Origin: Prasinococcaceae sp. CCMP 1430
Lineage: Eukaryota > Plantae > Prasinodermophyta
Direction of reading: 5' to 3'
DNA length: 55,775 bases
Assembly: GCA_013416795.1 (NCBI GenBank)
Contig: RQSC01000150.1
Coordinates: 1 to 55,775 of the forward strand
A model generated the notes under the pieces. The model was not told the origin of the DNA. It ran no database searches and was given only the letters and a program-made list of their open reading frames with translations. A program made the position numbers and the translations under genes. Positions 4,461 through 54,083 of the stretch are shown one piece after another. Within the stretch, counting starts at the first letter, position 1. Every line of letters starts with the position of its first letter.

Positions 4461-4650
4461 ACGCGGTCGCCGAGGCGGCCACGCGGCGCGTGTACGCCGC
4501 GTGCGAGGCCGAGGCGGCCAAGGGCACCAAGCGGGGGCTCGTCGAGGCGGACGCGACGTGGGACACGACCAAGGAGCTGGCGAGCAAGACCTACTACACC
4601 GCCATGAAGACGTGCGTCGCCGCCGAGCGCGCGCCCTCTGCCCTGTTGAC
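4460..4650 (+). other. Orphan plus-strand coding-like segment, unidentified
   Basis: DAVAEAATRRVYAACEAEAAKGTKRGLVEADATWDTTKELASKTYYTAMKTC has strong GC3 codon bias and ends at a GTGAGG donor. It abuts the antisense MFS CDS. Confidence 0.35.
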
Positions 4651-5010
4651 GGTGAGGTACGGTGCCAACTTGTGTACCGGTCGGTGGAGATGAACCTGAA
4701 CCCTGATCCCGAAACCCTGCTGTACACGCGCACGGTGCGGCGCCGGAAGCGCACGCGCCTCGAGTGTGTGTGGGGGGTGCGGTGGCATGCGGGTGCGTGC
4801 GGGGCGGGGTGGGTCACACCGCGAGCGCGGGGCCTCGTGTGTGGTGCTGGGGAAGGCGTTGGGTGTGTGACGGGGGCGGTCCAACGCTGCGCTTCCTCAC
4901 CCGTGCCGTCGCCGCGCCGCCGCGCGGCGCTGCATCAGCAGCGGCGCGAGCATCCGCTGCGCGGCACACCCAACCTGGCACCCAACGCACACCCTCCCCG
5001 TGGGTGCGCG

Positions 5011-5222
5011 ATGGAGGACGCACTCGCGCTGCACGCGGCGCTGTCGTCGGCCAGCGCGCCGCCGGTAGCGCGCTCGGCGCTGGCAGTGCTGTCGGATGCG
5101 CTGCGCATGTATGGCCCGCTCGACGTGGTCGTGTCATTCAATGGCGGCAAGGACGCCACCGTTGTCGCGCACCTCTGCCGCGCCGCGTTCGCCGCGCACG
5201 CGCGCGCAGCTGGCGTCGCCTA
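5011..5222 (+). CDS. FAD synthase (PAPS-reductase fold), N-terminal fragment cut by a gap
   Basis: MEDALALHAAL...VVVSFNGGKDATVVAHL matches the SFNGGKD signature of eukaryotic FAD synthases. Confidence 0.78.
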
Positions 5223-5239
5223 NNNNNNNNNNNNNNNNN
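5223..5239. other. Scaffold gap
   Basis: Run of N. Confidence 0.99.
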
Positions 5240-7396
5240 CGGCGCGGCGGGCGTCGGCCGTCGAGACGGAGCAGCTCGTGGCCGCGGCGGCCGTGGCCGC
5301 GGCCGCGCAGGCGTCGTTCTCGAGGTCGTTCACGAGCACCACCTCCCCCCTCGCCAGGCCCAGCTTCGAGGACGAGAGTGGTGGGAACGGCGACAGCGAA
5401 GACGACGACATGTTCAAATCGGAGGTCGAGCGATCCGTGGACGACGTCGTCTCGACGTGGCGCGCGGGTGGCGCGCGAGCGGCTTCGAACGGGGGCGGGC
5501 ACGGCCGCGGCCATGAGGGGGATGCGGGCGGGCCCGGCGCGCACGGCCAAGGCGGGGCGCGCCAGGACCAGGCGCCGATCTCCCGCTTCTCGAGCGCCTT
5601 CTCGCAGCTCTTCTCCAGGAGAGACAAGAAGCCTGGCCAGAGGAGGGAGCTCAAGACTGGCACCACGCGCAGGCTCAACACGACGAAGGGTGGCCGCGTG
5701 CAGCAGACGCGCCGCGAGAGCGCGCTGACCGTGAGGCTGCTCAGGCAGGGCGTCTTTGCCAAGCCCCCCGCGGAGAGGACGCACGAGGACATCGAGGAGG
5801 CCCACCGCCGCCTGCAGTGCCTCCACAACGACTTCTTGCGGCGCTGTGGCGACGATGTGGTGCGCAGCCTGTCGCGCACCGTCGAGCTGAAGTGCTTCCA
5901 CGCGGGCGACGTCGTCTTCCGCCAGAACGACTGGCCGGCGGAGAAGTTCTACATCATCGTCACGGGAAGGGTCAGAGTGAGTGTGCAGCAGATCGGCGGA
6001 GACAGGCCCTTGAACAAAATGGCATCGCTGCGCGGCTCGTCACAGGGCGACGTGGCGAGGGCGGGTGCGGTGTCGGCGGCCACCGAGGAGGCGCTCGCGC
6101 TGCGAGCGGCGCGCGCGGGAGTGGCGCGCTACGTCGGCGGGCGCAGGCCATCGCGGGTGGCCGCCAGTTCGGCGGAGGTGTCGAGGCAGGCCACAACCTC
6201 GAAGGGCGGGAACGGGCGGGGGGGAGGGGGTGCGGGCGATGAGATGAGTAAGGCTGGCGTGGCGGGTGCTCCGCGCGCGCTCGGCGCCAAGTCGCACACT
6301 GTGGCCGAGCTTGGTGACACCGACTCCTTCGGCGAGCTCTCGCTTCTGAACGACGCACCGCGCAGCGCGACGGTCACTTGCATGACGGAATCGTCCATGC
6401 TTGTCGTGAAGCGCCACGATTTCGATCGCTTCATGAAGGCCGCGGAGCAGAAGCTGTTGAGTCAGAAAGTCAAGACGCTGCGCGGGCTGAAGCAGTTCGC
6501 GGTGTGCGACGACACGCATTGCCGCGAAATCGCGCAGTTCTTCGCCGAGCATGAGTACGCCGAGGGCGACATCGTCGATCTGGACTCGTCCGAGCTCGTG
6601 CACTTCATAATCAAGGGTGACGCGCGCCTGTGCGTGCGGGCCATCGCGGGCGACGAAAGCAGGCCCGTCGGAGCCGCTGTCGCGGCAAAGAGGGGCAGGA
6701 AGGACAAGCATGTGCGCCTCATGGAGGTGCAGACCGTCGGCGTGGGCTCAAACTTTGGGGAAACGGGCATCTGCCTGGAGCACCGCCGGGGATGGGTGCT
6801 GCAGGTGACGAGCCCCGTGCTGCGCACGTATGCGATCAATCGCGTGCAACTGCTCGACCACGTCGACCCGCGCGTGCTGTACGCGATACAAGAGGAGATT
6901 GCCTTTCGCACGAGCTACTTGGACGACTTCTACGACGGGGCTGTGGATCGCGTCGCCAAGGTGCGTGCATGTGCGGCGCGTGCCCGCGCGGCCGCGCGCG
7001 CGCGCTATTTCACTGACCCAAGCGCACGCGCTCGCGTAGCTCAAAGAGAGCCAACCGGAGCTCGTGGAAGTTCTCAAGGACCGCGAGGCAGTGTACGACG
7101 GACACCGTCGGTCTTCAATCGAGGCACAGAACGCCACCAGCCTGCTCAAGGCCGGCGAGGCGGCGGAGGGTGGCCGTGCGCAATCCTCGTGGCGGCACCC
7201 ACCGACGGACGCGCCGCCGGATGCGGCGGCACGAGACAAGCGAGTGTCGACAGGCGATCTGGCCCAGGGCACTGCGGGCGGCAGCCGCGGACGCAATGGC
7301 AGCATTTTGGGGGCGCTTGGATTCGGAGAGCACGTGGACGGCGAGGACGCCCCGCTGCGCTTCCCGCTCGCCATGCAGAAAGCCAGACGAGACTAG
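5240..7396 (+). CDS. Protein with two cyclic-nucleotide-binding domains (5' end in gap), intron 6961-7039
   Basis: FHAGDVVFRQND..KFYIIVTGRV and FGELSLLNDAPRSATV (domain A); FIIKGDA..FGETGI (domain B). GTGCGT...CGTAG intron joins in frame to the 7064-7396 ORF. Confidence 0.85.
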
Positions 7397-18527: not shown

Positions 18528-20519
18528 ATGGGCTTTAGCCGGAGCGAGGTGCTCGTTTACCTGCCCGCACTCGGCCTGCGGCTAGCACTCGCCACGTGCG
18601 CGTGGTGGGCGCTCGGCTGCCGCCTCGCTGGCGCAAAGAGCGCGCTCGCTGCCGCGCACCGCGGCGCGCCGCCCGCGGCCGCAGCCGCCGTGCGCACCGC
18701 CGCGTTCGGTTTCTTAGCGGTGTCGTGCGTAGCTGAGCAGCTAGGCAGCCTGGCGCAGGTGCCGGCGGAGATGCTGCACCCGCCGCCGCCGTTCTTCCAG
18801 GCGATGTACGCTCTGCCAGGGGCGGGCGCGCTGCTGGGCGCGCCCGCAGTGTTGGTGGCGCTTCATGCTGCAGGTGCGTCGCGGCGCCGCTCTTCGAGAC
18901 GTGTGTGCGTCCGCGCGTGTGTGCGCGCGCAAAATAAGCCCCCCCTCCTCGGCGCCTCTGATGGGTGCGTTGGATGACATGGTGCTCCAGTATTCTGACA
19001 CGGTCGGCCGATCGACGCACGCACGCACGCACGCACGCATTCACACACGCAAAAACGCACGTGCGCACGCGCGCACGCACACTCTATCACAAATCCAACC
19101 ACGCACCGACACGCAAACGGACCGACTCTGCGAGCAGCGCTCATGGCGTGTGTCGCTGCGGCTGCCGGCTGGCGCTCGCGCTTGTCGCTTCCTGCCGCAA
19201 CCATGCTCTACTTTGTGTTCGGCGGGCTCATCCGCGTGCCGTTCAAGTTCTTCCACGAGGGGCTCACACCCATGCTGATTGCTGCAGTCCTCGCATGTGA
19301 CGCCGACGCAGCGGCTGCCACCTTCAGCGCGGATGCCCTCGCGCGGCGCGTGGCCGTGGGCGATCACAGCAACTGTGGGTATCGTGCTCGGCCCATCGCG
19401 AGCACGGAAGAGCTGCAGCGGCGCTGTGGATGGCTCAAGCTCGCCGCGGCGGCGCTTGTGGCGTGGCTGTACCTGGCAGCGGGCGTCAGCAAGCTGGTCA
19501 ACGGCGGCCCTTTCTGGTTCGCCGCGGACAACATGCGTAACCTGCTGTTGCGCGACTCGTCCGAGCCCATGGGCTGGGACTGGGGCGTCGGGCCTTCCGT
19601 GAGCCGCCTGCCAGACGTGATACTCAACGTCATGGGACTGGGCGCGATGTGCGCCGAGCTAGGATACGTCCTTGTGCTAGTGCCGTGGCTGCCTGACATG
19701 GTGAGGCTCATCCTGCCGCTGGCCATGGCGGGCATGCACGTGGGCATCTTCTTCGCGCAGAACATCCTCTTTGGCGATATGCTCGTCCTCAACGCGCTGA
19801 TGGTCTTCTTATTGTGGCTTGAGCGCAAAGAAGCAGCAGTGAAGGCTCATCGAGGCCATGTGGACCAGTCGAGCACAGAGGCGAAAGGTCGGAGCCTCTT
19901 TGCGGTCGAGGAGGACGCCGTGGAAAAGGTGGCGCAGGACACAGACGATCAGCTTCCGCACTCCGACGTTGAGCACGCGGTAGAAGTGGGGGATAGCGCG
20001 CGCAAGGGCAAAGGCAACTATGGGGCAGGATCGAAGCACGAGCATGCCGAAAAACCGGCGACGTTGGCGGCGCGCGCGCTTTTCTGGATGCTGCTGGCGC
20101 TCGGTGCCTCGGCGGCCGTCGGCTTGGAGGCGTACCCGCTGACGAGCGTGCAGATGTACAGCTTCAAGGATGTGAGCGGCACGGTCTTGTACCATGAGCT
20201 GCTAGAGATGCCGGGCGAGGTCAAGTCGCGGCCCGAGGAGTCGGTGGCCATCCTCAAAGACGGCCGCTACCGTCGCGCGCTCCGCTCTTGCTTTGAGGAT
20301 GGCAGCGGCGAGGCTGCAGTACGCGGCACTGAGAGGGACGGTACGGACGGCGGCGGCGCCGAGTGCCGTGCACTGCTGGAGCTAGCAGCGCGCACCTCGC
20401 AGAGCCACGGCACGACCTGGGTCGAGGCGAGGCAAGTCCGGTGGGTCTTCCGCTCCGATCCCTACGGTGACAATCGCGAGATAGTGGCGCGCCGAATCCA
20501 ACATACACACACACAGTAA
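18528..20519 (+). CDS. HTTM-like polytopic membrane protein, intron 18874-19137
   Basis: YLAAGVSKLVNGGPFW, MHVGIFFAQNILF and EAYPLTSVQMYS resemble the HTTM/VKG-carboxylase-like clan. The intron restores the frame. Confidence 0.65.
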
Positions 20520-20858
20520 CACTATCATTCTCAGCAGCGCTACGAACAGAAAAGGATAGACATACAGTAATTCATTTTTATTTTATTTTCATCAAGACTT
20601 CGCTTTTCACCTCCCTGGCTCCCTGCACAGCTCTTTCGAGGCGAAGTCGGCACCAAAAAAAAACTCCCACGGGCGTGCGTTTCTCGAACCCTCTCTGGCT
20701 GCAACTCCCTCCTGAAAAGCTGACTGATGAAGATGAGACCCTTTGTGTCCGACCGACGTTTTGATTTACGAGGCCTCACCCGCCCGGCCCCGCTGCGAGC
20801 GCCGATCCCCGGGTTCGACTGGGGCGGGGCGCGGGCGCGCGCCGCGCGGGGCGGCCAC

Positions 20859-21104
20859 NNNNNNNNNNNNNNNNNNNNNNNNNNNNNNNNNNNNNNNNNN
20901 NNNNNNNNNNNNNNNNNNNNNNNNNNNNNNNNNNNNNNNNNNNNNNNNNNNNNNNNNNNNNNNNNNNNNNNNNNNNNNNNNNNNNNNNNNNNNNNNNNNN
21001 NNNNNNNNNNNNNNNNNNNNNNNNNNNNNNNNNNNNNNNNNNNNNNNNNNNNNNNNNNNNNNNNNNNNNNNNNNNNNNNNNNNNNNNNNNNNNNNNNNNN
21101 NNNN
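20859..21104. other. Scaffold gap (likely hides the first TOP1 exon)
   Basis: Run of N. Confidence 0.99.
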
Positions 21105-21345
21105 CGGCGCGGGGTTCGCGCGCGGGGGGCGGGGCGCGGCGCGCGGGGGAGAGCGCTGCAATCGGTGCGGAGGTTGGGATCGGAGGGGTGGGGGGGGAGG
21201 AGGAGGGAAGGGCCGCGGGCCAGGCGCGCCGAGCGAGCGCGAGAACGCCTCCCCGACTGCGCCTCGTGCGGCCGCCGTGCCGCGCCTCGCGCGAACGCTC
21301 GCTGACTCGCGCGGCGCCGCACACCGCCGCCGCCGCCGCCGCCAG

Positions 21346-23649
21346 ACTCGTCCGATGACGACGTTCCGCTCGCGGCGCGCATGAAGAGCGCGCCGAAGCC
21401 CAGAGTGAAGAGCGAGGAACCCGACTCGGACGATGACGTGCCGCTGGCCACGCGCGCCAAGGCGGCCGCGGGGACGAAGCGGCCCGCCCCGCCGAACGAT
21501 TCGGACAGCTCCTCGGACGACGACGTGCCCTTGGCCTCTTTCATGAAGAAGGTGCGCTCGCCTGCCCGCATCGCCCGCCGGCCCGCTCGCGTCGCCTGCG
21601 CGTGCGCTCGCGGGAGGCGCGAATGCCCTTGCGCGCCGCGCTCGCATGGGTTAGGAGGGGTGGGCGTCGGGTGAGGTGGGGTGGATGGGTGGGTGGGTGG
21701 GTGGGTGGGCAGGTTTGCGGGGGGCAGGTTTGCGGGTGGAGGAGAGCGCGAGCGCGCGAGCGGGAGAGGGAGCGCGCGGCCCGCGTCGGCGCTGACGCCG
21801 TCGGCGGGCAATTGCGCGCGCGCGCGTCGCCCGCTCATTGCAGGCGCCGGCGCCTGCCAAGAAGAAGGCGCCAGCCGCCAAGCGCAAGCGCGTCGAGGTT
21901 GCCGCGGCCGTGAACAAGAGGGCCAAGGGGTCGGCCAAGAAGAAGGGCGCGAAGCTGGCCAACGGGCGCAAGCTGCCGGAGTCCTCGTCCAGGCAGAAGA
22001 TGTGGACGACCCTCGAGCATCAAGGCGTGCTCTTCCCGCCCGAGTACGTGCCGCACGGCGTGAAGATGAAGTACGACGGCAAGGAGGTCACGCTCACGCC
22101 TGCGCAGGAGGAGGTGGCCACCATGTACGCGGTGATGCTGGAGACCGACTACGTGCGCAAGCCGGCCTTTAACGCGAACTTCTGGAAGGACTGGAGCAAG
22201 CTGCTGGGCAAGAAACACGTCATCAAGGCGCTCTCCAAGTGCGACTTCAAGCCCATCCACGCGTGGCACGTCGCGGAGCGCGAGAAGAAGAAGCAGATGA
22301 CCAAGGAGGAGAAGCTCGCCATCAAAGAGAAGAAGGAGGCCGACGAGAAGCGATTCAAGGTGTGCCTGGTGGACGGCAAGCCCCAGGACGTGGGCAACTT
22401 CCGCGTGGAGCCCCCCGGCCTCTTCCGCGGCCGCGGCGAGCACCCGAAGATGGGCTGCCTCAAGCGCCGCATCGGCCCGCGCGACATCACGCTGAACCTG
22501 TCGAAGAAGCGCGCGGACGGCTCCAAGCAGGACCCACCGCCGTGCCCCATCGCGGGCGCCAAGTGGGGCTCGGTGATTCAGAACGACAAGGCGACGTGGC
22601 TGGCCACGTGGGACGACCCGGTGATGAAGGGCGCGACCAAGTACGTGTACCTGGCGGCCAACTCGGACTTCAAGGCGGACAGTGACATCGCAAAGTACGA
22701 GAAGGCGCGAAAGCTCAAGGACCACGTGGGCGCCGTGCGTGCGGACTACTGGAAGCGCATCTCCAAGTGCAAGGACACGGCTGAGGTGCAGATCGGAGTG
22801 TCGTGCTACTTCATCGACAAGTTCGCCTTCCGCGCGGGCGGCGAGAAGGACACCGACGAGGAGGCCGACACGGTGGGCTGCTGCAACCTGAAGTCGGAGC
22901 ACGTCACCCTCGGCGAGGGCACGAAGATCGTCTTCGACTTCCTCGGCAAGGACTCCATCAGGTACTACAACGAGGTGGAGATCGACGAGCGCGTGCACAA
23001 GGCGCTGGCCGCCTTCCAGAAGAGGCGCAAACCGGGCGACAACCTGTTCGCCAACATGGCGGTCGGCGACCTCAACGACTTCCTCAAGCAGCACATGCCC
23101 GGGCTGTCCGCCAAGGTGTTCCGCACGTACAACGCGAGCATCACGCTCGACCAACAGCTGCTCACCACCAACGAGAAGATGTCGCTCGACCAGAAGGTGG
23201 CCGACTACAACCGCGCCAACAAGGACGTAGCCGTGCTATGCAACCATCAGCGCTCCGTGCCGGCAGCGCACGGCTCGCAGATGGAGAAGATGAAGGGGCG
23301 GCTGGGCGACATCAGGAAGGAGATGAGGGCTGCGAAGAAGGACCTCAAGGCGGTCAAGGCTGGCACATACGTGAAGAAGGAGGGCCAGAAGACCACCCCG
23401 AGCGAGGAGCGCCTGAAGAAAAAGATCCAGACGCTGTCGGCGCGCGAGGCGAAGATGTCGCTGCAGATGGAGGTGAAGGAGGACCTGAAGACGGTGGCGC
23501 TGACCACCTCGAAGATCAACTACCTCGATCCGCGCATCACCGTCTCGTGGTGCAAGAAGCACGACGTACCCATCGAGAAGGTCTTCAACAAGTCGCTCTA
23601 CAACAAACACCACTGGAGCATGACCATCGAGCCCGACTTCCGCTTCTGA
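21346..23649 (+). CDS. TOP1: DNA topoisomerase IB, intron 21552-21843; first exon(s) missing
   Basis: Three SDDDVPLA repeats, [64 protein letters not shown] (catalytic Tyr). Confidence 0.97.
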
Positions 23650-23953
23650 GTGAGTGGGAGGAGGACGGCGCTGGGTGATGCGCGCGGAGGCGCGGCCGGC
23701 AGCAGCGGGCGGCGGGGCGAGGGCATCGCAGGTGACATCGCATGCACATACGGCAGCATCGGGGGGATCGATCGCATTTGCCGCGCCGCGCCGCGCCAAG
23801 TAAATACACGCGCGGGGCGGGACATTCTCACAGCAGCTCATCACGACCACCGAAGCTCCAATTATCACATAGGTTTATTGTATAGGGGTGGCCTCGAGCT
23901 GCGGCAGCACAAAGTCGGCGCGCGCACAGAAGCTCGTTATTAAGTGGGCCCGC

Positions 23954-24757
23954 TTAGAATACCAGGTCGTCGTCCTGGTGCGGCTGCAGAAGGTCGACGA
24001 AGGACTCCGCACTGCCACCGGCGCCGAGCGTCACGGGCGCGCCAATCTGACCCGATGCCAGGCGCGCCTCCTCGGCCTTCTTGGCCTCCTCTTTGGCTTT
24101 GGCGATCGCCTCCTGCTTCTTCGCCTGGATCTTCTTCAATCGGAAGAACTCCTCGCGTTCGAGCTCGTCGAGCTCGCCCTTGATGTACGAGATGGTGTTC
24201 TCGAGCTTCGGCGTCACGACGTTCTCCAGCGCATTCACGCGGCGATTGGTCGTCTTGATCGCCTCGTCGAGCGTCAGGAAGGACGTCTGCAGGCTCGCCA
24301 GCTTGATGAGCTCCTCGACAGCCTTGCCGTATTTCTCCTGCGCGCGCCGCACCTGCTGGCCGCCACGAGCGAGCCCATGCAAGCCACTGCGGCTCTTGAG
24401 ATCGTCCGGATCGGTGGCGTCTGCAAAGGCCGCCAGCCTGACTCCCGCCACGTTCTCGGTGCTCGCCTTGACCTTTACCACCGCCTGGCCCACGTTCTCG
24501 AACGCTGCGTGCTTGACGTTGTCACCCGCCGCGTACTGCACCTCGGTGAGCGCAAACGCCGCCTCGCGCATGTGCTCGCCCATCGCTTGCTTCGCGGCGA
24601 CGATCTCTTTGAGAATCTGCCGGAAGCGCATGGTCAGCGCGTCGCTCTTCTTCTTGAGCAGCTGGAAGCCCTTCTTCGCCGCGGCGAGGCGGATCTTGAT
24701 GCCCGCCAGCACCGTCACCGTCGGCACCACATTAAGGCGCGCCCCGGCCCCGCTCAT
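23954..24757 (-). CDS. ATP6V1D: V-type proton ATPase subunit D, intronless
   Basis: LLKKKSDALTMRFRQIL, LASLQTSFLTLDEAIKTTNRRVNALENVV, ELDELEREEFFRLKK. Confidence 0.97.
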   Translation of the reverse strand: MSGAGARLNVVPTVTVLAGIKIRLAAAKKGFQLLKKKSDALTMRFRQILKEIVAAKQAMGEHMREAAFALTEVQYAAGDNVKHAAFENVGQAVVKVKASTENVAGVRLAAFADATDPDDLKSRSGLHGLARGGQQVRRAQEKYGKAVEELIKLASLQTSFLTLDEAIKTTNRRVNALENVVTPKLENTISYIKGELDELEREEFFRLKKIQAKKQEAIAKAKEEAKKAEEARLASGQIGAPVTLGAGGSAESFVDLLQPHQDDDLVF

Positions 24758-34026: not shown

Positions 34027-34628
34027 CTAGTCGCGCGCCAGAAGAGTTCGCCCGCGTCGAGCGCGCGCGCTCGCGCGCGCGCGCGCTGTCGCGATTGCGG
34101 CGCCGTGGTTACTGTGCGTTGATGTCGGTGGCGCGCGCGCGTGGGTGGGCGGGCGGGCGGGCGAGCACGCGGGGGGAGAGGGTCCTCTCATCGCCTGTCA
34201 GGAAAGTTGCCCATTCCAACCGTCGGCCTCGCTGCGATGCCCCTTTTCACCAAGGTGGACGGGGGGCGCGCATTCGCGCACTCTCGCGCTTTGAGGGCGC
34301 CTGGTGGCACCCACCGGGGCAGGGCACGCCTGACGCTCGATCGCCGCCAGCGCCGGCAGGAAGCACAAAGAGTGCTGTCTTGGTGCAGTGTACGCATCGC
34401 AAGTAATTTAGGAAGTGTACGTGCGTGTCCCGCAGTACACTACGCAGTAGTAACCAAACAAAGGACCGGTCCGTCGCTCTCCTCAAGGCTTCGTCGTGTG
34501 GCACATGTCGCTTCAAACATTAGAACTGATTTTTTGCGTCTCCTGCTCGCAGCGCGGCACCCGTGGTGCCGCCCTACGCGCGAGCGCGCACGCACGGCGC
34601 GCGCTGATACGCGCGTCGGTATGGTCGA

Positions 34629-36926
34629 TCACGGGCTTGTCGAGTTGCCGCCAGTGATCGCCTGCGCAATGGCGATGACATCCTCGGTGGTGATCGAGCC
34701 ATCGCCGTTCATGTCACCGGCCGACTCGATGCACGGCGATTCAATGACGCCGCTGACCACCGCATTCTGCACCACGATGAGGTCGGCCACGTCAGTGGCG
34801 CCGTCGTTGTTGACGTCGCCGGAGCCGTCTTGCGCACACGTGCCCGCTCCACCTGCAGCGCAAACCTCTTCCGCCTGCGGACAGCAGTCGCCGACGATCG
34901 CGCACGCGGCGGCGTCGCAGCCACAGCCGTTCGACGTGTACGCGCCGCAGTCGGCAGACCCGCACGCGGGTGGATCGGCGGGGCACTCCGAAACCTCCGA
35001 CAGCGCCGGCGAGGTCTTGTACGCGTCGCAGCTGGCAGGGTCGGTGGCGGTGTTGCACGAGCCGTCGCCGTCCCTCTCCGTGGGCGCCTCGGCGACCTTG
35101 TACACTGAGGTCGAGCCCGTGGCGGCGTTGGCGACGACGAGCATGTCGGCGCAGATGGGCGAGGCGGCGGCAGGCACGAAGACCATGCTCTCAGGGCGGA
35201 CGTCGAGCGAATTGAAGGTGAAGTCGTTGTCATCCTCCTGATCGGAGATGTCCACGTCGCCAAAGTTGCGGCGGTTGAGGTAGTCGTTGAAGACGGGCGC
35301 CGTCGGATCGGTTACGTCGTACGTGATGACGCCGCTCTGGCGCTCCAAGGCGATGAACGCGGCAATCTTGCCGCCGGCGAGCCTTCCGACGGTCGCGGCA
35401 ATGGGCACGGGGCCCTTGTCATCCCCGCGGTCGTCGAAGTTGTTCCTGAAGCTGTCCGAGTTGAAGAAGTCCGGGTTCAGGACGGCGATCATCTCCTCGA
35501 AGTCCGACCCGCTGTCGTACACGAGCTCGAGGCCGTCGGGGTTGGCCCTGTAGACGGAGAAGGAGCGGCTGCCGAACGCGTTGATGGTGGAGCACTCGAG
35601 GTTGCCGCTGGCGTCGAACTGGGCAGGGTACGCATTGGTCACTCGGAGGCGGCCGAGCTTGGCGTCGTCGCGGATCAGCGCATCCGTCGGGCAGTTCGTG
35701 GTCAGCTCGCCCAGCCGCACCCTCTCTGCGAAGTTGGCCACGTCGATCGATCTCCCATCGTTGGAAGTGACGAGGTAGTCAACGCCGCCGAGCGAGAAAG
35801 GCGCCACGCTGTCGGGCTGCTGCATGAACGTCACGTTGACGCCGTCCCAGCTCCCCGCGATGTTGATGCCCCCGTCCTCGTCGGACGGGTCCATGACTGC
35901 GGTCGGGTACGCGAGCCCGTCGACGTACGCGAACGTGCGCGACGCCATGTCGAAGGCAGCGGCGGCGTTGTTTTTCTGCAGCATGACGTAGAGGGTCTGG
36001 CCGTCGTCGGAGAAGGCGCAGTCCTCGGGCTCGAGGTTGGCGGAGGCGTTGTTCGCGTTGGGGCCGAAGAGGCGCACGCCGCGGGCGAGCAGATCCTCCG
36101 AGTCGAACCCGTCGAAGGTGTAGGTCTCGTCGGCGATCACGCTCACCGACGCCACCGGCTGGGTGGTGATCTGCACGTCGACGACGGTCACGCCGCCCAC
36201 CGGATCCTCGTCGCCAGGGGTGTAGAAGAACTCTCCCTCGTTGACGCACGCCACCGCGGTCTTGTCGCCGTTGACGCTGATGGCCCCGGGGTGCGAGCCG
36301 GTGTTGACCGAGGCGAGGAGGAGCCCCGTGATGGAATCGACGAACGTGAGTTTGCCCCTGGCATCCCTCGGGTCTGCCCGGACGGTGGCGACGAGGACCC
36401 CGTCGACGGCATGGACGCGCCTCACGCTATCGCCGGTGAAGGTGGGATCGGCCGCTTGCGTGAGCGCGATGACGTCGATGGAGCTGACGTTCTGCGGGTT
36501 TGTGGGATCGACCAGCGAGATCACGTCCACGCGCCCGCTGTCCCCGTTCGACACGTACGCGCGGCGCGTCGCGGCGTCGTAGGTGACAAACTCCGCGGCG
36601 TCCTCTGCGTACACGCCGCTCTCGTAGGTGCCAATCCACTGCAGCTGGATGACCTGCGCGGCGGCGAGGCTCGCGGCCGCCGCGGCGAGCGCAGCGGCGA
36701 GCGCAGCGGCGAGCGCATCGTCGCGCGCGCGGACGGATAGCGCTGTGGCGCGCCGCGCGCGAGCGAGGGCCACGAATCGCCAATCGATTGGGCCGCCGGC
36801 CGCCGCGGCACATCGCGTTCGCGCGTGGCCGCCCAACTGATCGCCAGGTGGCGGGGCGCGTGCCCAACGGGCGTGTGCCGGGCACACGCCCTTTGGGGAA
36901 CGCGGCGCCAGCATCGTTGCCTGCAT
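34629..36926 (-). CDS. Secreted choice-of-anchor I (alkaline-phosphatase-associated beta-propeller) protein with somatomedin-B-like and type I dockerin C-terminus, intronless
   Basis: IGTYESGVYAEDAAEFVTYD, NLEPED, LQKNNA, LGRLRVT, AFGSRSFSVY, YDSGSDFE, FDDRGDDKGP, FIALER; then CGCDAAACAIVGDCC and GDVNNDGATDVADL..AGDMNGDGSITTEDV. Signal-like ALAAALAAALAAAAASLAAA|Q. An out-of-frame ATG at 36718 just before it suggests a 1-nt error or an upstream start. Confidence 0.83.
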   Translation of the reverse strand: MQATMLAPRSPKGVCPAHARWARAPPPGDQLGGHARTRCAAAAGGPIDWRFVALARARRATALSVRARDDALAAALAAALAAAAASLAAAQVIQLQWIGTYESGVYAEDAAEFVTYDAATRRAYVSNGDSGRVDVISLVDPTNPQNVSSIDVIALTQAADPTFTGDSVRRVHAVDGVLVATVRADPRDARGKLTFVDSITGLLLASVNTGSHPGAISVNGDKTAVACVNEGEFFYTPGDEDPVGGVTVVDVQITTQPVASVSVIADETYTFDGFDSEDLLARGVRLFGPNANNASANLEPEDCAFSDDGQTLYVMLQKNNAAAAFDMASRTFAYVDGLAYPTAVMDPSDEDGGINIAGSWDGVNVTFMQQPDSVAPFSLGGVDYLVTSNDGRSIDVANFAERVRLGELTTNCPTDALIRDDAKLGRLRVTNAYPAQFDASGNLECSTINAFGSRSFSVYRANPDGLELVYDSGSDFEEMIAVLNPDFFNSDSFRNNFDDRGDDKGPVPIAATVGRLAGGKIAAFIALERQSGVITYDVTDPTAPVFNDYLNRRNFGDVDISDQEDDNDFTFNSLDVRPESMVFVPAAASPICADMLVVANAATGSTSVYKVAEAPTERDGDGSCNTATDPASCDAYKTSPALSEVSECPADPPACGSADCGAYTSNGCGCDAAACAIVGDCCPQAEEVCAAGGAGTCAQDGSGDVNNDGATDVADLIVVQNAVVSGVIESPCIESAGDMNGDGSITTEDVIAIAQAITGGNSTSP

Positions 36927-40720: not shown

Positions 40721-42973
40721 ATGGTGCTCACCCAGCTCGTCGACACGCACGATGAGCCGGTGAACTACTTCCTCTCGTCCAACTGGACGGGCAAGTCGGG
40801 CGCCACGGAGGCGGCCGCCGGCGACCGTGCCGGCACCAGTGGAACGGCCGCTGAGTCCGGGCGGGGCAGGCGAAGGGCCGGTGCGGTCGACCCGTCGCAG
40901 CCAACCGTCTTTGCAGGGAAGCCGTCCACCACGTACCTCTGCCCGGTGTGCCACGACGTGATGGAGCTGCCCACGGTCTGCGAGGACGGCGTGACGTACT
41001 GTCGCGCCTGCGTGCCGCTTGGCGCCGCCGGCGGCGGCAAGAGCGCCGACCTGGCGCTCGACGAGTCGCTGCTCAACATGACACGCCAGCTGCCTATCGT
41101 GTGTCGCAACGCGCTCACCCGCAGGCGCCGCGGCGATGGCGACAGCGGCAACGCCACGTGGGTGTACGACTACGCGGGCTGCCAAAAGACGCTCACCATC
41201 GCGGGCCGCGCCGCCCATGAGGCCGAGTGCAGCTTCGCGCTCGAGCAGTGCAACCTGCCCTTCGCCGACTCGCCCATGGACAACTGCCCGCTCGTGCTTC
41301 GCAGGGTGACGCTCGAGCAGCACAGGAAGGTGTGCCCGCATCGGCTTGTCGAGTGCCAGCACAAAGGCTGCGGCCGGCGAGTGCAGGCGCGCAAGCTCGC
41401 CGACCACGAGAACGTGTGCTGGCACAAGCCCATGACCTGTCCCAACCCGCCGTGCCTTTGGCGCGGCACGCGGCGCGAGCTCAGCTCGCACCTGGACGTC
41501 TGCCCCGAGGCCGAGGTGGTCTGCGGCATGGAGGACACGGAAAACCCCACGCAGAGCTGCAAGCACACGTGCCGCCGGCGCATGCTCGATTTTCACCGCC
41601 CGCAGTGCGAGCTGCGACACGTCCCGTGCTCCTTCTGCCAGACGCCCGTGTCGTACGCGCACCTCCAGGAGCACGAGGAGGCGTGCGAGTACCGCAAGGT
41701 GCTGTGTGGCCAGTGCGGGCAGATGGTGCCAGTGCAGCGCTACGGCGAGCACGTGCGCTTCTTCTGCGCAGCGGGCAGGCGGACGTGCGAGTTCAAGGAC
41801 TACGGCTGCTCGGAGAGGTGCGCTCCCGGCGAGCTCGCGTCACACATGATCGAGAATGCGCACGCGCACCTGCGGCTGGTCATGCTGCAGCTCGAGCGCG
41901 TCAAGGGGGACACGGACTCGTGGAGCGCGGAGGTGGCAGACGTGCGCGCCGCGGTGGTCGCGTCCGTGCAGCGCTCCGCGGAAGAGCTCGACGGGGTGCG
42001 CGAGGCGGTGGCGCAGATGCGCGAGGAGGGAGAGCGAGAGACGGTTGACCTGCGCACGCGCGTGGACGCGCTTCAGAGGCTCTACGATGACATGGCGGCC
42101 ACCGTGCGGCGTCGACTCGCCGAGGTCGATGAGGAGGTCACACAGCGCGCGCACCTCATCGTCAATGAGAACCGCTTGCTTCGCGAGGCGCTCGCGAAGT
42201 GCCTCACGCGCGAGGAGCTGCAAGCCGCGCTGCGCGACGTGGAGAGTGGCCGCGCGCTCGCCGCCGAGGAGGTCGCCGAGGTGCGCCGCAACGTGGAACG
42301 GCACAGCCTGCAGTGGGAGGCCGACGCCGCCAAGCTCACCGAGCTCGCCACCGATTCGGCCGCACAGAGCCGCGCTGAGGCCGAGGCCCTGCGCGAGCAG
42401 TGCGTGGACTTCGCCGTGGGTAACAAGGAGAAGTGGGGGCACCTGTGGGCGACCGTGCGCGAGGTGGGGCGCGCGTTCGCGACGGAGGCGACGGCGACGC
42501 ACGCGCGTGGCGCGGCTCTCGAGGAGCGCGTGTCTGCGCTCAACGAGAACCACAACCCTCACCTGGTGCGGTCGCAGGTGGAGCTCGCGGCGATGGGCGG
42601 CGAGCACACGTTCTCGCGCAAGCCGGGTGCCGCGCGGGGCGACGCGGCGGACTCGGCCAGGGGGCGCGGCGGCGCAGACAGGTGCGACTTCCTTCGCGCG
42701 CTCGCGCGCCCGCGCGCGCGAGCGCGAGCCCCCACGCGCCCGCGCGAGGGACTGAGCGCCTGCACGCAGGAAGGTGCGCAGCTGACGAGAGCACCGCAGC
42801 GCCCAGCGAGCGGAGACCAACGCCATGGCGGCCTTGACCGGCAGCCATCGCAGTCGGGCGCCGGCCGCCGCGCCGAGGGCGGGCGCTGGCGGCGTCTTGA
42901 GGAGCAAGCGCTCGCACGGCCAGCCGTCGGCGGCGGGGCCCAGACGCGCGTGGGCGTGACGTCGCGCGCGTGA
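40721..42973 (+). CDS. RING/U-box-like + multiple TRAF-type zinc fingers + coiled coil (probable E3 ligase); 3' end may be spliced
   Basis: YLCPVCHDVMELPTVCEDGVTYCRAC; repeated HxxxCxxxxxxCxxxxC units (HRKVCPHRLVECQHKGC, HLDVCPEAEVVC, HEEACEYRKVLCGQC); long heptad-rich tail. Confidence 0.8.
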   Translation: MVLTQLVDTHDEPVNYFLSSNWTGKSGATEAAAGDRAGTSGTAAESGRGRRRAGAVDPSQPTVFAGKPSTTYLCPVCHDVMELPTVCEDGVTYCRACVPLGAAGGGKSADLALDESLLNMTRQLPIVCRNALTRRRRGDGDSGNATWVYDYAGCQKTLTIAGRAAHEAECSFALEQCNLPFADSPMDNCPLVLRRVTLEQHRKVCPHRLVECQHKGCGRRVQARKLADHENVCWHKPMTCPNPPCLWRGTRRELSSHLDVCPEAEVVCGMEDTENPTQSCKHTCRRRMLDFHRPQCELRHVPCSFCQTPVSYAHLQEHEEACEYRKVLCGQCGQMVPVQRYGEHVRFFCAAGRRTCEFKDYGCSERCAPGELASHMIENAHAHLRLVMLQLERVKGDTDSWSAEVADVRAAVVASVQRSAEELDGVREAVAQMREEGERETVDLRTRVDALQRLYDDMAATVRRRLAEVDEEVTQRAHLIVNENRLLREALAKCLTREELQAALRDVESGRALAAEEVAEVRRNVERHSLQWEADAAKLTELATDSAAQSRAEAEALREQCVDFAVGNKEKWGHLWATVREVGRAFATEATATHARGAALEERVSALNENHNPHLVRSQVELAAMGGEHTFSRKPGAARGDAADSARGRGGADRCDFLRALARPRARARAPTRPREGLSACTQEGAQLTRAPQRPASGDQRHGGLDRQPSQSGAGRRAEGGRWRRLEEQALARPAVGGGAQTRVGVTSRA

Positions 42974-43189: not shown

Positions 43190-45271
43190 TCATGGCGGAG
43201 GTATCTTGTCACACGGCACCATGCCGCACTCGCCCGGGCACTCTTTGCCGCAGTCTTGCAGCTGCGGCAGCCCTTCGATCACCGCGTTCATGGTGGAGAG
43301 CAGCAGCGTGAGCGCGTCGTGCAGATCCTGCGTCACGGGCGTGAAGCTGGGGAACTGGCGATTGAGTCCCGTGAAGTTCGCGGGCGGCAGCTTGAAGGTA
43401 GCCGGCTTGAGCGCGAAGGGCATGCCGCCGTATTGTCGCTTGTCCCATTCCCACACCACCTTCTTGTCTGGCACGGTCAGGTACTGCGTGGACCACGTGT
43501 AGTGGAACATAGACGCCTCGCCCACCCGGTCATCGGCGGGCAGTTGCGAGATGAGGCGCGTCTGGTAGCGCTCGTGGTCTTCGAGGTCGGTGGGCACGCG
43601 CGCGTCGGCCACGGCCATGGACCATGCGTACATCTCACGCACCCACCCCAGCTCTTTCTTGGCCTGGAGGGCAAGGCGCGGCCGCGCGAGGAGATCCGCG
43701 TGAAAGGGTCAGCCGCACGCACGCGCGCGCGCGCGCGCGCGCGGGCGCGTGGGCGCGCTGGGGGGAGGGGGGGGGGGGTGCGGAGGGTGCTACTGACGTC
43801 CTTGACAGTGCCGCACCTTCTCCGAGTCTTCGATTGCATGAGTGTACACCTGCCACCCGTCGGCGACTCGCCCGAAATCCTCGAAGCGCATGAGCACCGG
43901 CGCTGGCCCAGAGCACGGAATGTCGTCGATGTTGCCCTCGTATCCCAGCTCGCGCCACAAGGGCGGCAGCCGGGGGTAGCGCGTGTTGATGTACTCGAAG
44001 TGGAAGGCGTAGCTGGTGCGGGAGTCCCGAGGCGGCATGGGTATGGGTTTGACGAACACATAGTCCGTCTCAACCAGCAGGATCCACTCGCCGCGCCGCG
44101 CGTCGTCGGTCTCGAGCCAGCGCTTGATGGCGTTTGGACGGTCCTTGACGGGGAAGTCACACCACTCGTCGCACTCCCCGTCGGACCGCGGGTGCACGCG
44201 CACGGTGGGTACCTCGTCCATGAGGATGTCGGCGCGCGAGCGATGGAGCACGCGGGTGAAGTGGCGCATGGCCTCTCCACCCGGCATGGCGCGCGCGCGC
44301 AGGTACGTGCCGTACATGATGCGAGTCTGGTAGTTGCTGTAGGGGTTGCCGTTGGACGTGCAGACGGTGTGGATGCCACCGCCCTTGCGAAATGAGTCCA
44401 GCGTGGGGGGGTCGTACGGCTGCGCGCCGCGGGAAAAGGGGGAGGCGGTCGGAGCGCGCGCGCAAGTCAGCGATCGCCCGCGCCGGGCCCTCTTCCTCGC
44501 GCTCGCGCGAGACGCTCGCGCTCGCGCGAGACGCGTGCGCCGCACCTTTGCCCCGTTGTCGTCGGGCGCCTGCTTGGTGCCCGGCCTGGGGTTGAAGCCG
44601 CTGGTCCACGGCACGCTGGGGCCGTACGCCTGCGTCTCGTACGTGTCGATGTCATGCCCGGCCTGCTCCTTGAGCCAGCACTCGTGGTAGTGCTCGCCGC
44701 ACTCCTTCTTGGAGCGGCCGCAAAATACCCACGCGTCGCATCGCCCTGCCTTGCCCTGCGTCTTCTCATTATGTGCCGCGCACGACGCGCAGCAGGCCGC
44801 GGCGCTGTCCTTCTTGTTGTGCGGCCCCCAGCCGACGACCGCGCCGGTCATCTCGGTGTTCTCGCGGCTGTGGCACGAATCGGTGGACAATCGTCCGAAG
44901 GGGTGGTACAGCAGCGCGCCGTCGGTCGCGGCAGCGGGCCCTGCGCCCGCGTCGCCCGCTCGCAGCAGCTGCACATCGTGCGCATCGGCGGTCGCGCCCG
45001 CGCTCGCGGTGCTGCCGGCGTCACCGGTGACGCCGTAGTGCTTTGCGACGAGCAGGTCGCCGACGGCCTCGACCTTGCTGCGCCCCGAAGCGGCGGCGGC
45101 GAGCGCGTTGCGGTGCACGTCCCGCGGAGGCGCGAGCATCGCGGTCACAAGCGCGTACGACACCATGAATGACCCGCAAGCAAGCGCGGCCATCGGCGCG
45201 TACCGCACGGCCGCGCCGCCCAGCCCTTCCGACGAGCGCTCGCCATCGGGGGCGCGCCGCCACCGCGCCAT
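43190..45271 (-). CDS. HPAT: Hydroxyproline O-arabinosyltransferase-like glycosyltransferase with PAN/Apple-like domain, introns 44420-44545 and 43664-43816
   Basis: Type II TM; CHSRENTEMTGAVVGWG..CCASC..CDAWVFC..CWLK (PAN-like); HTVCTSNGNPYSNYQTRIMY, FTRVLH, DFPVKDRPNA, ETDYVFVKP, LGWVREMYAW, FHYTW. Confidence 0.85.
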
Positions 45272-45417
45272 CGCGTGCCGCCGTTGGCCGGCCGATCGCG
45301 AGCCGGGCGGGTGGGGCGTCGCGCGGGAGGTCGGGTGGGCGCGCAGCGCTACGGGATGGGTGGATGGTGTGGTGTGGGGCGGGGTGGGTGGGGGTGGGGG
45401 GGGGTATTCGGGGGCTA

Positions 45418-45717
45418 GCGCTGCCCCGCGCGCGATGTGGCGCCCCCCGCTTGGGCGCTGTGATCGTCCCGAGCCCCCCTCCCCTTCCCATGCACGCGTC
45501 CGTACCCCGCGCGCTCGCGCGCTCGGCGCGGCTCCGCGCGCTCGCGCGATCGGCGCGGCTCCGCGCTCCCCCCGCGGCGGCGCCACGGCCGCCCGGGGAA
45601 CGGCCCCGACCGACCGAGGAGCGAGCCGAGTCCCGGCCGACGGGGAACCGACGGATCGAGTGGGCGACCGAAGTGCAAAAGATGTGATCTGGCCTTCCTC
45701 CCTTTCGCTTTGAGTTT
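45418..45717 (-). repeat. Copy 1 of a shared upstream element (5' of HPAT)
   Basis: Colinear with 48523-48719, e.g. GCGCTGCCCCGCGCGCGATGTGGCGC and TGGGCGACCGAAGTGCAAAAGATGTG..TCCTCCCTTTCGCTTTGA. This copy has an extra ~90 nt at ~45480-45570. Confidence 0.88.
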
Positions 45718-45824
45718 GCCGTGACGAAACAACCGACATCTTACTGTACATGCGTCTCTCAAGTGTCGCCTAGCTCGACGACCACAACAGAGGGCGGCCC
45801 TCTGAGCACAACACTCGTGGTGCG

Positions 45825-51888: not shown

Positions 51889-52432
51889 GGCATTCGAGGG
51901 TGTGGTGGTGGTGTGAGGGGGTGTGGGAGGGGGGGTTGGCAGTAGCGACGGGGCTGCGGCGGTCCACGGGCGGAGCTGCGGCGGTCCAGGGACTCCGTCC
52001 AGGTCACGGGGAAATGTGGGGGAAGGTGTGTCGCTGCGGCGTCGGCACGGGCGAGCCCGGCGAGGCACTCCCCCCGACCCCACCCACCCAACCCGCCCCC
52101 CGTGCGCGCCTGGCCTGGGGCGCGCTCAGTGGCGCGCCCCTTTTTTCGCGCGCTCACTGCGGCGGTGCGGCCGCCCCCTGAACAGCCAAAAATGGCGGGG
52201 CGCGGGACGGAAAACCTCAACAGCTGTCTGTGGGGCCCAGCCGACTTGGGCGGCTGTGTCGGAGTGGCGCGGCGTGCGCGGTGCGGCGCGGGCGAGTCGA
52301 ATTTCCTGATCGTCTGCGGGGTCCGGTCCGTTCGACCCGCGCGCGAGCGAGGCGCGCGGGGCGGGCAGGGGCGGACGCGAGAGGTGAAAGGCTGGCTGGT
52401 GGGGGTCGGGCCGCCCCGCCCGGCGCGGTCGG

Positions 52433-52986
52433 NNNNNNNNNNNNNNNNNNNNNNNNNNNNNNNNNNNNNNNNNNNNNNNNNNNNNNNNNNNNNNNNNNNN
52501 NNNNNNNNNNNNNNNNNNNNNNNNNNNNNNNNNNNNNNNNNNNNNNNNNNNNNNNNNNNNNNNNNNNNNNNNNNNNNNNNNNNNNNNNNNNNNNNNNNNN
52601 NNNNNNNNNNNNNNNNNNNNNNNNNNNNNNNNNNNNNNNNNNNNNNNNNNNNNNNNNNNNNNNNNNNNNNNNNNNNNNNNNNNNNNNNNNNNNNNNNNNN
52701 NNNNNNNNNNNNNNNNNNNNNNNNNNNNNNNNNNNNNNNNNNNNNNNNNNNNNNNNNNNNNNNNNNNNNNNNNNNNNNNNNNNNNNNNNNNNNNNNNNNN
52801 NNNNNNNNNNNNNNNNNNNNNNNNNNNNNNNNNNNNNNNNNNNNNNNNNNNNNNNNNNNNNNNNNNNNNNNNNNNNNNNNNNNNNNNNNNNNNNNNNNNN
52901 NNNNNNNNNNNNNNNNNNNNNNNNNNNNNNNNNNNNNNNNNNNNNNNNNNNNNNNNNNNNNNNNNNNNNNNNNNNNNNNNNNNNNN
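52433..52986. other. Scaffold gap
   Basis: Run of N. Confidence 0.99.
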
Positions 52987-53407
52987 CCGCGGCAGCGGCG
53001 GCGGCGGCGGCGGCCCGCGCACGGGATGGGCCGCGTACGGCGTGGGCGTGCTGCACGGCAGCGCGGGCACGGGCCACCTCTTCGGCGTGCTTCCGAGCCT
53101 CGCGCTGCCGCCGTTCCTGGCGGGCGTCTTCCTCCTGAGCTACCTGCTCGCGGCGGTCGCCATGATGTCCTCGGTGGGCTTCATGCTCGGCCGCATGGTG
53201 CGCTGGGGCGGCGCCCGCGCGATCAGCCTGCTCACGCTGGGCAGCGGCCTGCTCGCGGTGTGCATCGGGCTCTACTGGGTGGCGGCGTCCGTGTCGCACC
53301 CGGCGAGCGAGTTCGACGAGCGCACAGGCGGCGGCGGCGGCGGCGGCGGCGGCACTGCAAGGGACTTCGCCGCCGCGTCGCTGGTGGCGGCGCACGCCGC
53401 TGGATGA
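52987..53407 (+). CDS. UreH/NicO-like nickel/cobalt transporter, C-terminal fragment
   Basis: GVLHGSAGTGHLFGVLPSLALP followed by two further hydrophobic helices; TGTAA lies 21 nt after the stop. Confidence 0.62.
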
Positions 53408-53589
53408 TCGCGTAGGGACGCGCCATCTGTAAATATGTACCGTACTACTGGTGTGTACAGCGCAGACACGTAACACGCATCCGCACGCCACGCATGCCTC
53501 CCCTCCCAGCTCCCCTCGCGACCAGGGGCAGGCTCATGGCCGCCCTCGCAAACGCATGTGCACGCACATGATTCCATTCGAAAGCCTGC

Positions 53590-53684
53590 ATTTTTTTTAA
53601 ATTTAAAAATTAAAAATACTCAAATTTTATATTAAAAAAGTTAAAATATGAAAATATAATTTAAAAGAAATTAAAATTATTATA
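53590..53684. other. ~95-bp almost pure A/T island
   Basis: TTTTTTTTAAATTTAAAAATTAAAAATACTC... embedded in a GC-rich background. Confidence 0.9.
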
Positions 53685-54083
53685 GGGATCTGCGGCTAGG
53701 TAAAACGCATGCGGCGGGTGCGGCGGCCGGCGCGGGAATAAGGGCCTCGCGGGCGGCATTTAGGACCCGGGGGCGGAATTAAGGTCGAGGGGTGGGAATT
53801 AAGGTCGGTCCGTTACGAATTAGGATTGGCGCGCGCGCCGGGGGTGGGTGGGTGAGCTCATGGACGGCGTGCTGTGCATGGCGGGCTTTTTTACCACGTC
53901 GTAAAAGTACCGATTGAGAAGGCTCCTCCGGCTTGGCTGCCGTACAGCGCGGCGTCGGGGCGTGAGCGCGCGCGCGCGCGCGTGCTGCCTGAGAGCACGA
54001 GAGACAGAGAGAGAGAGATAGTCTCACCTTTTGCTCGACGGGGGGGGGGGGAAACCCATCCACGGACGCGAGACCGTCCGTAG

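Follow-up and report, generated by a model that had tools for sequence, protein, structure and literature searches.

Contig RQSC01000150.1 of the marine green picoalga Prasinococcaceae sp. CCMP 1430 (assembly GCA_013416795.1) carries on its minus strand a gene whose product ends in a dockerin, and we analyzed this gene within the whole stretch of 55,775 nucleotides (nt), referred to below as the window. Pairing of dockerins with cohesins is the textbook mechanism of enzyme assembly on the surface of certain bacteria and is, to our knowledge, barely documented in eukaryotes. The gene is an uninterrupted, single-exon open reading frame (ORF) of 765 amino acids (aa) at 34629..36926 with its stop codon at 34629-34631. 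From the N-terminus onwards, it specifies an Ala/Leu-rich hydrophobic segment (aa 71-90, 36657..36716), which ends in AAA followed by Q and was delimited by a hydropathy scan and by correspondence to the signal-peptide core of orthologues, a choice-of-anchor I (COA-I, MSP130-type) beta-propeller (aa 105-611, 35094..36614), a Cys-rich linker (aa 616-700, 34827..35081) with 12 cysteines that every orthologue retains, and a dockerin module (aa 703-756, 34659..34820). The linker includes an eight-cysteine core resembling somatomedin B (SMB; aa 655-690, 34857..34964) that was assigned from its spacing and a sub-threshold match to the Pfam model Somatomedin_B. Contigs from RNA libraries (run X2, and run X1, whose assignment to RNA is a guess) delimit a 3' untranslated region at 34384..34628, and comparison with a Tara scaffold (L001) and a contig of run X9 revealed a 5' breakpoint at 36716..36719, all on the minus strand. 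The order of the parts is a COA-I/MSP130 propeller, then a conserved cysteine knot with SMB-like spacing and finally a terminal dockerin of the bacterial kind (type I in Pfam).

A preliminary description of this DNA had pointed to two calcium-binding repeats with dockerin spacing at the C-terminus of the protein, preceded by a CGCD..GDCC module. Both were found exactly where it had placed them, and the CGCD..C..GDCC stretch, read from the DNA, corresponds to aa 668-682 of the 765-aa ORF. As read from the sequence, calcium loop 1 is DVNNDGATDVAD (aa 704-715, 34782..34817, minus strand) and calcium loop 2 is DMNGDGSITTED (aa 738-749, 34680..34715, minus strand). Both loops have D, N and D at positions 1, 3 and 5 as well as Asp at position 12, and their starts are 34 residues apart. 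The Pfam model Dockerin_1 (PF00404), for which the gathering score is 22.9 bits, yielded 29.3 bits (E = 1e-6) when all 765 aa were submitted and 32.9 bits when the tail was submitted by itself. It matched all four orthologues, with a best E-value of 7.3e-10 when isolated tails were submitted to Pfam. When a profile of the four orthologous tails was run against all PDB sequences, 17 dockerin chains came out on top, headed by 2y3n_B (E = 2.5e-6) and followed by 4fl4_A, 1ohz_B and 2ccl_B. EF-hand proteins gave only partial matches in this search, with E-values of at least 0.02.

Structure prediction led to the same assignment. The AlphaFold2 (AF2) model of aa 690-765, for which the underlying alignment contained bacterial dockerin segments, had a mean predicted local distance difference test (pLDDT) value of 85.5 and consists of a loop-helix unit, a short linker helix and a second loop-helix unit, the helices spanning aa 713-725, 733-736 and 747-758. 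Upon comparison with the PDB by Foldseek, ranks 1-41 were all occupied by dockerins, with target-normalised template modelling (TM) scores of up to 0.85 and root-mean-square deviations of 1.4-1.9 Å over 55-65 residues, whereas EF-hand proteins of the troponin/calmodulin type started at rank 42 with a TM score of 0.24. The nearest clusters in the ESM Atlas all carry PF00404 and originate from Bacteria or Archaea. We conclude that the tail is a genuine bacterial-type dockerin ('type I' in Pfam) and more than a chance motif. The preliminary description had already called it a bacterial-type type I dockerin on an algal secreted protein and had proposed the Dockerin_1 hidden Markov model (HMM) as a check; the HMM score above the cut-off and the PDB searches by sequence and by fold bear this out.

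The resemblance to the type I dockerins of cellulosomes (PDB 1ohz_B, 2ccl_B, 4fl4, 6kgc_B and 8x39) includes the tandem loop-helix pair with D-x-N-x-D-G...D loops 34 residues apart, the terminal position on a secreted protein and the close superposition of the model over 55-65 residues. The algal case differs in its eukaryotic host and in a cargo that is not a glycoside hydrolase. Dockerins of C. thermocellum have Ser-Thr at the cohesin-contact positions 10-11, whereas repeats 1 and 2 of the algal protein carry V-A and T-E, respectively, a pattern that is neither Ser-Thr nor symmetric. A further difference from the cellulosomal proteins lies in two conserved cysteines, C697 directly before loop 1 and C732 in an S-P-C motif of the linker between the repeats. 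These residues bracket the first dockerin repeat, which suggests a disulfide clasp.

A cysteine before loop 1 and a linker 'SPC' are shared with bacterial multi-dockerin proteins, namely P0112 from a metagenome-assembled genome of the Sandaracinaceae (Myxococcota), P0079 and P0146, and proteins of this type are among the best single-domain matches listed (33-36 bits). They differ from the algal protein in having 5-10 tandem dockerins and no propeller, and they share only about 30% identity with it, such that they do not qualify as a recent donor. Within P0079, P0146 and P0112, each dockerin is bracketed by a cysteine before loop 1 and by S-P-C or T-x-C in the linker. This Cys-bracketed subclass may represent a disulfide-clasped type of dockerin.

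The cysteine knot ahead of the dockerin had been described as a somatomedin-B module. Its eight cysteines (aa 655-689) are spaced C-x4-C-x7-C-x-C-x4-C-x5-CC-x6-C, and thus the same number of cysteines as in the SMB domains of vitronectin and ENPP falls within about 35 residues, with nearly equal spacing and with the C-x-C-D and CC elements in common. One algal spacing is x4 where SMB has x3. In addition, the PROSITE signature for SMB includes D/N-F/Y after the CC pair, and this element is missing from the algal module. The Pfam model Somatomedin_B (PF01033) aligned over profile positions 3-38 of 40 with 10.8-14.4 bits (10.8 bits on the whole protein) compared to a gathering cut-off of 23.1 bits, and none of the four orthologues reached the threshold (best E = 0.048 in Pfam). 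No SMB chain was retrieved at E ≤ 10 when the profile of the four orthologous tails was searched against the PDB. An AF2 model of aa 616-700 based on a four-sequence alignment was unusable (pLDDT 41.6), and a feature search of the ESM Atlas with the Cys-rich region gave no usable match. Of the earlier assignment, the eight cysteines and their near-SMB spacing hold up, but in view of the HMM scores membership in the somatomedin-B family is not established and we refer to the module only as SMB-like.

The cargo of the dockerin, which the preliminary description had not recognized, is a propeller of the choice-of-anchor I / MSP130 family. PF22494 matched aa 105-611 with 213.3 bits (cut-off 32), and the NCBIfam model NF038117, 'choice-of-anchor I family protein', gave 321.9 bits (cut-off 300), so that the full-length domain lies above both curated thresholds. 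The domain is described as a seven-bladed barrel with predicted Ca2+ sites, and the family is known from bacteria, bilaterians and 'diverse algae' (PMC11878542). Its distribution is mostly bacterial, and the idea that the algal protein was built from bacterial and eukaryotic parts is therefore too simple. Members are described as cell-surface proteins: the sea-urchin MSP130 proteins are glycosylphosphatidylinositol (GPI)-anchored cell-surface glycoproteins, and bacterial COA-I proteins reach the surface via PEP-CTERM or LPXTG (PMC11878542). In agreement, the bacterial relative P0008 ends in LPATG and a hydrophobic-basic tail, P0005 and P0007 end in LAYTG and such a tail, and L003, the only bacterial relative found when JGI metagenomes were scanned with the full-length alignment, ends in a PEP-CTERM signal. 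The algal protein stops 9 residues after the dockerin. A hydropathy scan revealed no C-terminal hydrophobic tail, and a transmembrane, GPI-type, LPXTG or PEP-CTERM end is absent. Judged by this sequence comparison, the dockerin occupies the position that is taken by the surface anchor in the rest of the COA-I/MSP130 family, and the algal protein differs from its relatives in having a dockerin preceded by a cysteine knot where sea urchins have GPI and bacteria LPXTG or PEP-CTERM. While dockerins and COA-I proteins as such are known families, the dockerin in place of a conventional anchor on an MSP130-type surface protein is new; the word 'dockerin' occurs 0 times in the account of the family (PMC11878542).

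Several lines of evidence identify the gene as native to a GC-rich green-lineage alga, with no sign of recent transfer. The G+C (GC) content around the gene is uniform at about 0.66-0.72, and a Pfam scan of the neighbouring ORFs identified a WD40 protein, TMEM65, a TRAF/Sina zinc-finger protein and a plant-type hydroxyproline O-arabinosyltransferase. The Tara Oceans metagenome scaffold L001 has 98.8% nucleotide identity and is colinear from the gene into DNA that holds the WD40-like neighbour, and the 765-aa ORF is colinear with the Tara orthologues L001 and L002. Orthologous proteins from ocean assemblies are 99% (P0001), 76% (P0002) and 67% (P0003) identical, and all 13 C-terminal cysteines as well as both calcium loops are invariant in these three. 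The P0003 locus (L004, JGI sample 3300016798, GC 0.61), an orthologue of 67-68% identity, contains a canonical AT-rich GT...AG intron of about 105 nt (L004:2459-2565) at the position corresponding to aa 265, and the gene caller had split this gene into two products; the window gene has no intron. Ratios of nonsynonymous to synonymous substitution (dN/dS) calculated according to Nei and Gojobori, for which only exon 2 of L004 was entered, lay within 0.2-0.55 for each of the three modules (propeller, Cys-rich region and dockerin). These sequence comparisons show that purifying selection has conserved the gene in three relatives or more, and that the constraint on the dockerin equals that on the propeller. 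The most similar bacterial propellers share only 34-37% identity. The best bacterial single-dockerin score among the matches listed is 37 bits compared to 119-136 bits for the orthologues, and we therefore see no recent donor.

The 5' end of the gene required closer consideration. In the orthologues P0001, P0002 and L004, a Met is located 6-17 residues ahead of an Ala/Leu-rich hydrophobic core that ends in A-A-A followed by Q, and by inspection these N-termini appear to be typical signal peptides. The corresponding ATG of the window, at 36718-36716, does not lie in the reading frame. At 36716-36719, the window has just 3 nt, the out-of-frame ATG, where L001 has 101 nt with an in-frame ATG. The site is flanked by CGCGACG direct repeats, and the distance from the ATG to the shared repeat is 5 nt in the window vs 18 nt in L001. 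Further upstream, the frame remains open as far as an ATG at 36926. This codon would add about 65 residues and is probably not the true start. One contig of run X9 (same organism label, about 55x depth) agrees with the window as far as position 36719 exactly, beyond which 131 nt of different sequence follow. This overhang equals the 101-nt segment of L001 plus a 30-nt k-mer overlap, suggesting that the organism possesses the segment and that it dropped out during assembly. No contig bridges 36711-36719. In our view, the window is probably mis-assembled at the 5' end of the gene, with about 98 nt missing at 36716-36719.

Sequence data from other runs were compatible with transcription. A contig from a marine metatranscriptome (run X2) spans 34384-34938 with 98.7% identity and 7 differences and thus covers the 3' untranslated region, the dockerin and the SMB-like module. 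Run X1 contributed contigs that match the window without any difference; they extend over most of the ORF and 209 nt past the stop codon (including 34420-34764). The classification of this run as RNA is a guess, and contigs as such cannot prove transcription. Taken together, these matches are supportive of transcription of the gene, but not decisive.

Run X1 also contains a second sequence that is 90-95% like the propeller gene at 35512-36218 and reaches a k-mer depth of about 2,700-6,900 vs about 10 for the window-identical contigs. The same variant is present in run X12 and absent from run X9. It may stem from a very highly expressed close homologue of another strain or species or from an unassembled paralogue.

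Several explanations other than a native, secreted dockerin protein had to be weighed. The calcium loops could belong to a plain EF-hand pair acting as a calcium sensor or buffer, and weak single-loop matches to EF-hand_1, _5 and _6 (9.6-13 bits) point in this direction. Every EF-hand model, however, stayed below its cut-off of about 25 bits, Asp rather than Glu is present at position 12 of both loops, and dockerins lead the PDB rankings by sequence and by fold with a wide margin. We consider an EF-hand pair very improbable and rejected it on the basis of the sub-threshold scores and the first places of dockerins in both kinds of search. Even less credible is an origin from a bacterial contaminant or a chimeric assembly. 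It is true that the propeller and dockerin families are both mainly bacterial and that the window gene is intronless, but the uniform GC content, the eukaryotic neighbours on both sides, the same colinear arrangement on an independent Tara scaffold, the spliceosomal intron in one orthologue and the remoteness of bacterial homologues (34-37% identity for the propeller and, among the matches listed, 37 bits for the dockerin) led us to dismiss it. The contamination that the preliminary description had kept as an alternative to its green-alga origin is thereby refuted by the neighbours, by L001 and by the L004 intron. Finally, the start codon and 98 nt may truly be deleted in the sequenced strain, leaving an unsecreted copy or a recent pseudogene while wild relatives are intact. 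The 3 nt in place of the 101 nt of L001, the out-of-frame ATG and the flanking CGCGACG repeats would fit such a deletion. On the other hand, the X9 contig departs from the window at 36719 for 131 nt as expected for a 101-nt insert plus a 30-nt overlap, the ORF is otherwise undamaged and open upstream to an ATG at 36926, and window-identical contigs of run X1 (guessed to be RNA) cover it. Genuine damage at the 5' end is improbable, although it deserves more weight than the two preceding explanations.

What the dockerin does on this protein is a separate matter. In the mechanism that we propose, a signal peptide of the orthologue type would direct secretion of the propeller protein and the dockerin would fold around two Ca2+ ions. 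It would replace the covalent anchor of the family: by docking to a cohesin-like module, carried by a protein of this alga that is itself anchored in the wall or membrane, it would keep the propeller at the cell surface without a covalent bond. The cysteine knot might serve as a rigid, protease-resistant spacer. The main argument for the dockerin working as a tether is that it sits where relatives in the family carry their surface anchor, and we regard the chances as evenly balanced that it is a non-covalent, Ca2+-dependent tether of the propeller that acts via a cohesin-like partner.

A number of observations weigh against such a tether. No cohesin or cohesin-like protein of the alga was seen; the DNA covered comprised the neighbouring ORFs in the window, for which a Pfam scan gave no cohesin match. 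Word-index searches with the tail (aa 640-765) and with the dockerin (aa 696-762), the latter at E-values of up to 10, returned only orthologues, a result that is uninformative on paralogues because a single dockerin cannot reach significance against 5.8 billion proteins. The cargo has no match to a glycoside hydrolase or a carbohydrate-binding module in Pfam or NCBIfam, and the analogy to cellulosomes covers the tether only. As the start codon of the orthologues is out of frame in the assembled window, the signal peptide of this exact copy is deduced from the orthologues only. Furthermore, Peer et al. are said to have described in 2009 many bacterial and archaeal dockerins without a known cohesin. 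With regard to further dockerins, a dockerin profile built in the course of this work was run against the 55.8-kb window translated in six frames and detected exactly one module (E = 4e-23) and no second dockerin. In an exhaustive profile search, the best 150 of 1034 matches were bacterial-looking multi-dockerin proteins. Such proteins outrank single-dockerin proteins, and therefore algal paralogues are not visible in the best 150 of 1034. Among the matches listed, only the orthologue cluster covers both the SMB-like module and the dockerin.

These observations bring up an orphan dockerin, that is, a true dockerin fold without a cohesin. It would be a Ca2+-stabilised terminal module with a different ligand, for example wall polysaccharide, another wall protein or a second copy of itself, or its role would be confined to stabilising the secreted protein in Ca2+-rich seawater. 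This explanation would account for the lack of a visible partner and for the blank word searches for paralogous dockerins. It is also in line with the nearest relatives among the matches listed, which are multi-dockerin proteins of uncultured bacteria that are likewise without a known cellulosome-like partner, and with the proposal that the cargo family itself binds Ca2+ (PMC11878542). It does not explain why the dockerin resides exactly at the position of the relatives' surface anchor, nor why it is as constrained as the propeller according to dN/dS. We therefore judge an orphan dockerin rather unlikely, if by no means negligible. The proposed tether could be part of a larger arrangement, a true cohesin-dockerin surface display in Prasinoderma-type picoalgae in which dockerins stand in for GPI- or sortase-type anchors on a group of secreted proteins, this MSP130-like propeller among them, and plug Ca2+-dependently into cohesin-repeat scaffolds of the wall. 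This is possible, yet we put it forward tentatively and with less conviction than the tether itself. The same reserve applies to the joint reading that such a display system would represent an ancient equivalent, in eukaryotes, of the bacterial one rather than a recent transfer.

Among eukaryotes, cohesin domains were believed to occur only in choanoflagellates and sponges, and vertebrates have no detectable dockerin (PMC6030884), and dockerins are absent from green-algal cellulases (PMC6032398). In the literature searched, no paper was found that names both dockerin and Prasinoderma. A family of proteins that depends on surface anchors and appears to have adopted a dockerin as the anchor in one algal lineage constitutes a clean, testable case. 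It also adds an algal member with a new, putative type of anchor to the MSP130 family, which is discussed in connection with animal biomineralisation. If a partner exists, it would provide insight into the little-known cell surface of an early-branching green alga and a eukaryotic, seawater-adapted cohesin-dockerin pair.

Elsewhere in the window, an ORF of 750 aa on the plus strand (40721-42970) combines TRAF-type and Sina zinc fingers and is a clearly eukaryotic neighbour. On the minus strand, the ORF at 43793-45751 has a PAN_4 domain ahead of the hydroxyproline O-arabinosyltransferase (HPAT) domain, a wall-glycoprotein enzyme of the plant lineage. The GC content dips to 0.49 at 52001-54000 and to 0.60-0.63 at 20001-24000 and is 0.66-0.74 in the rest of the window.

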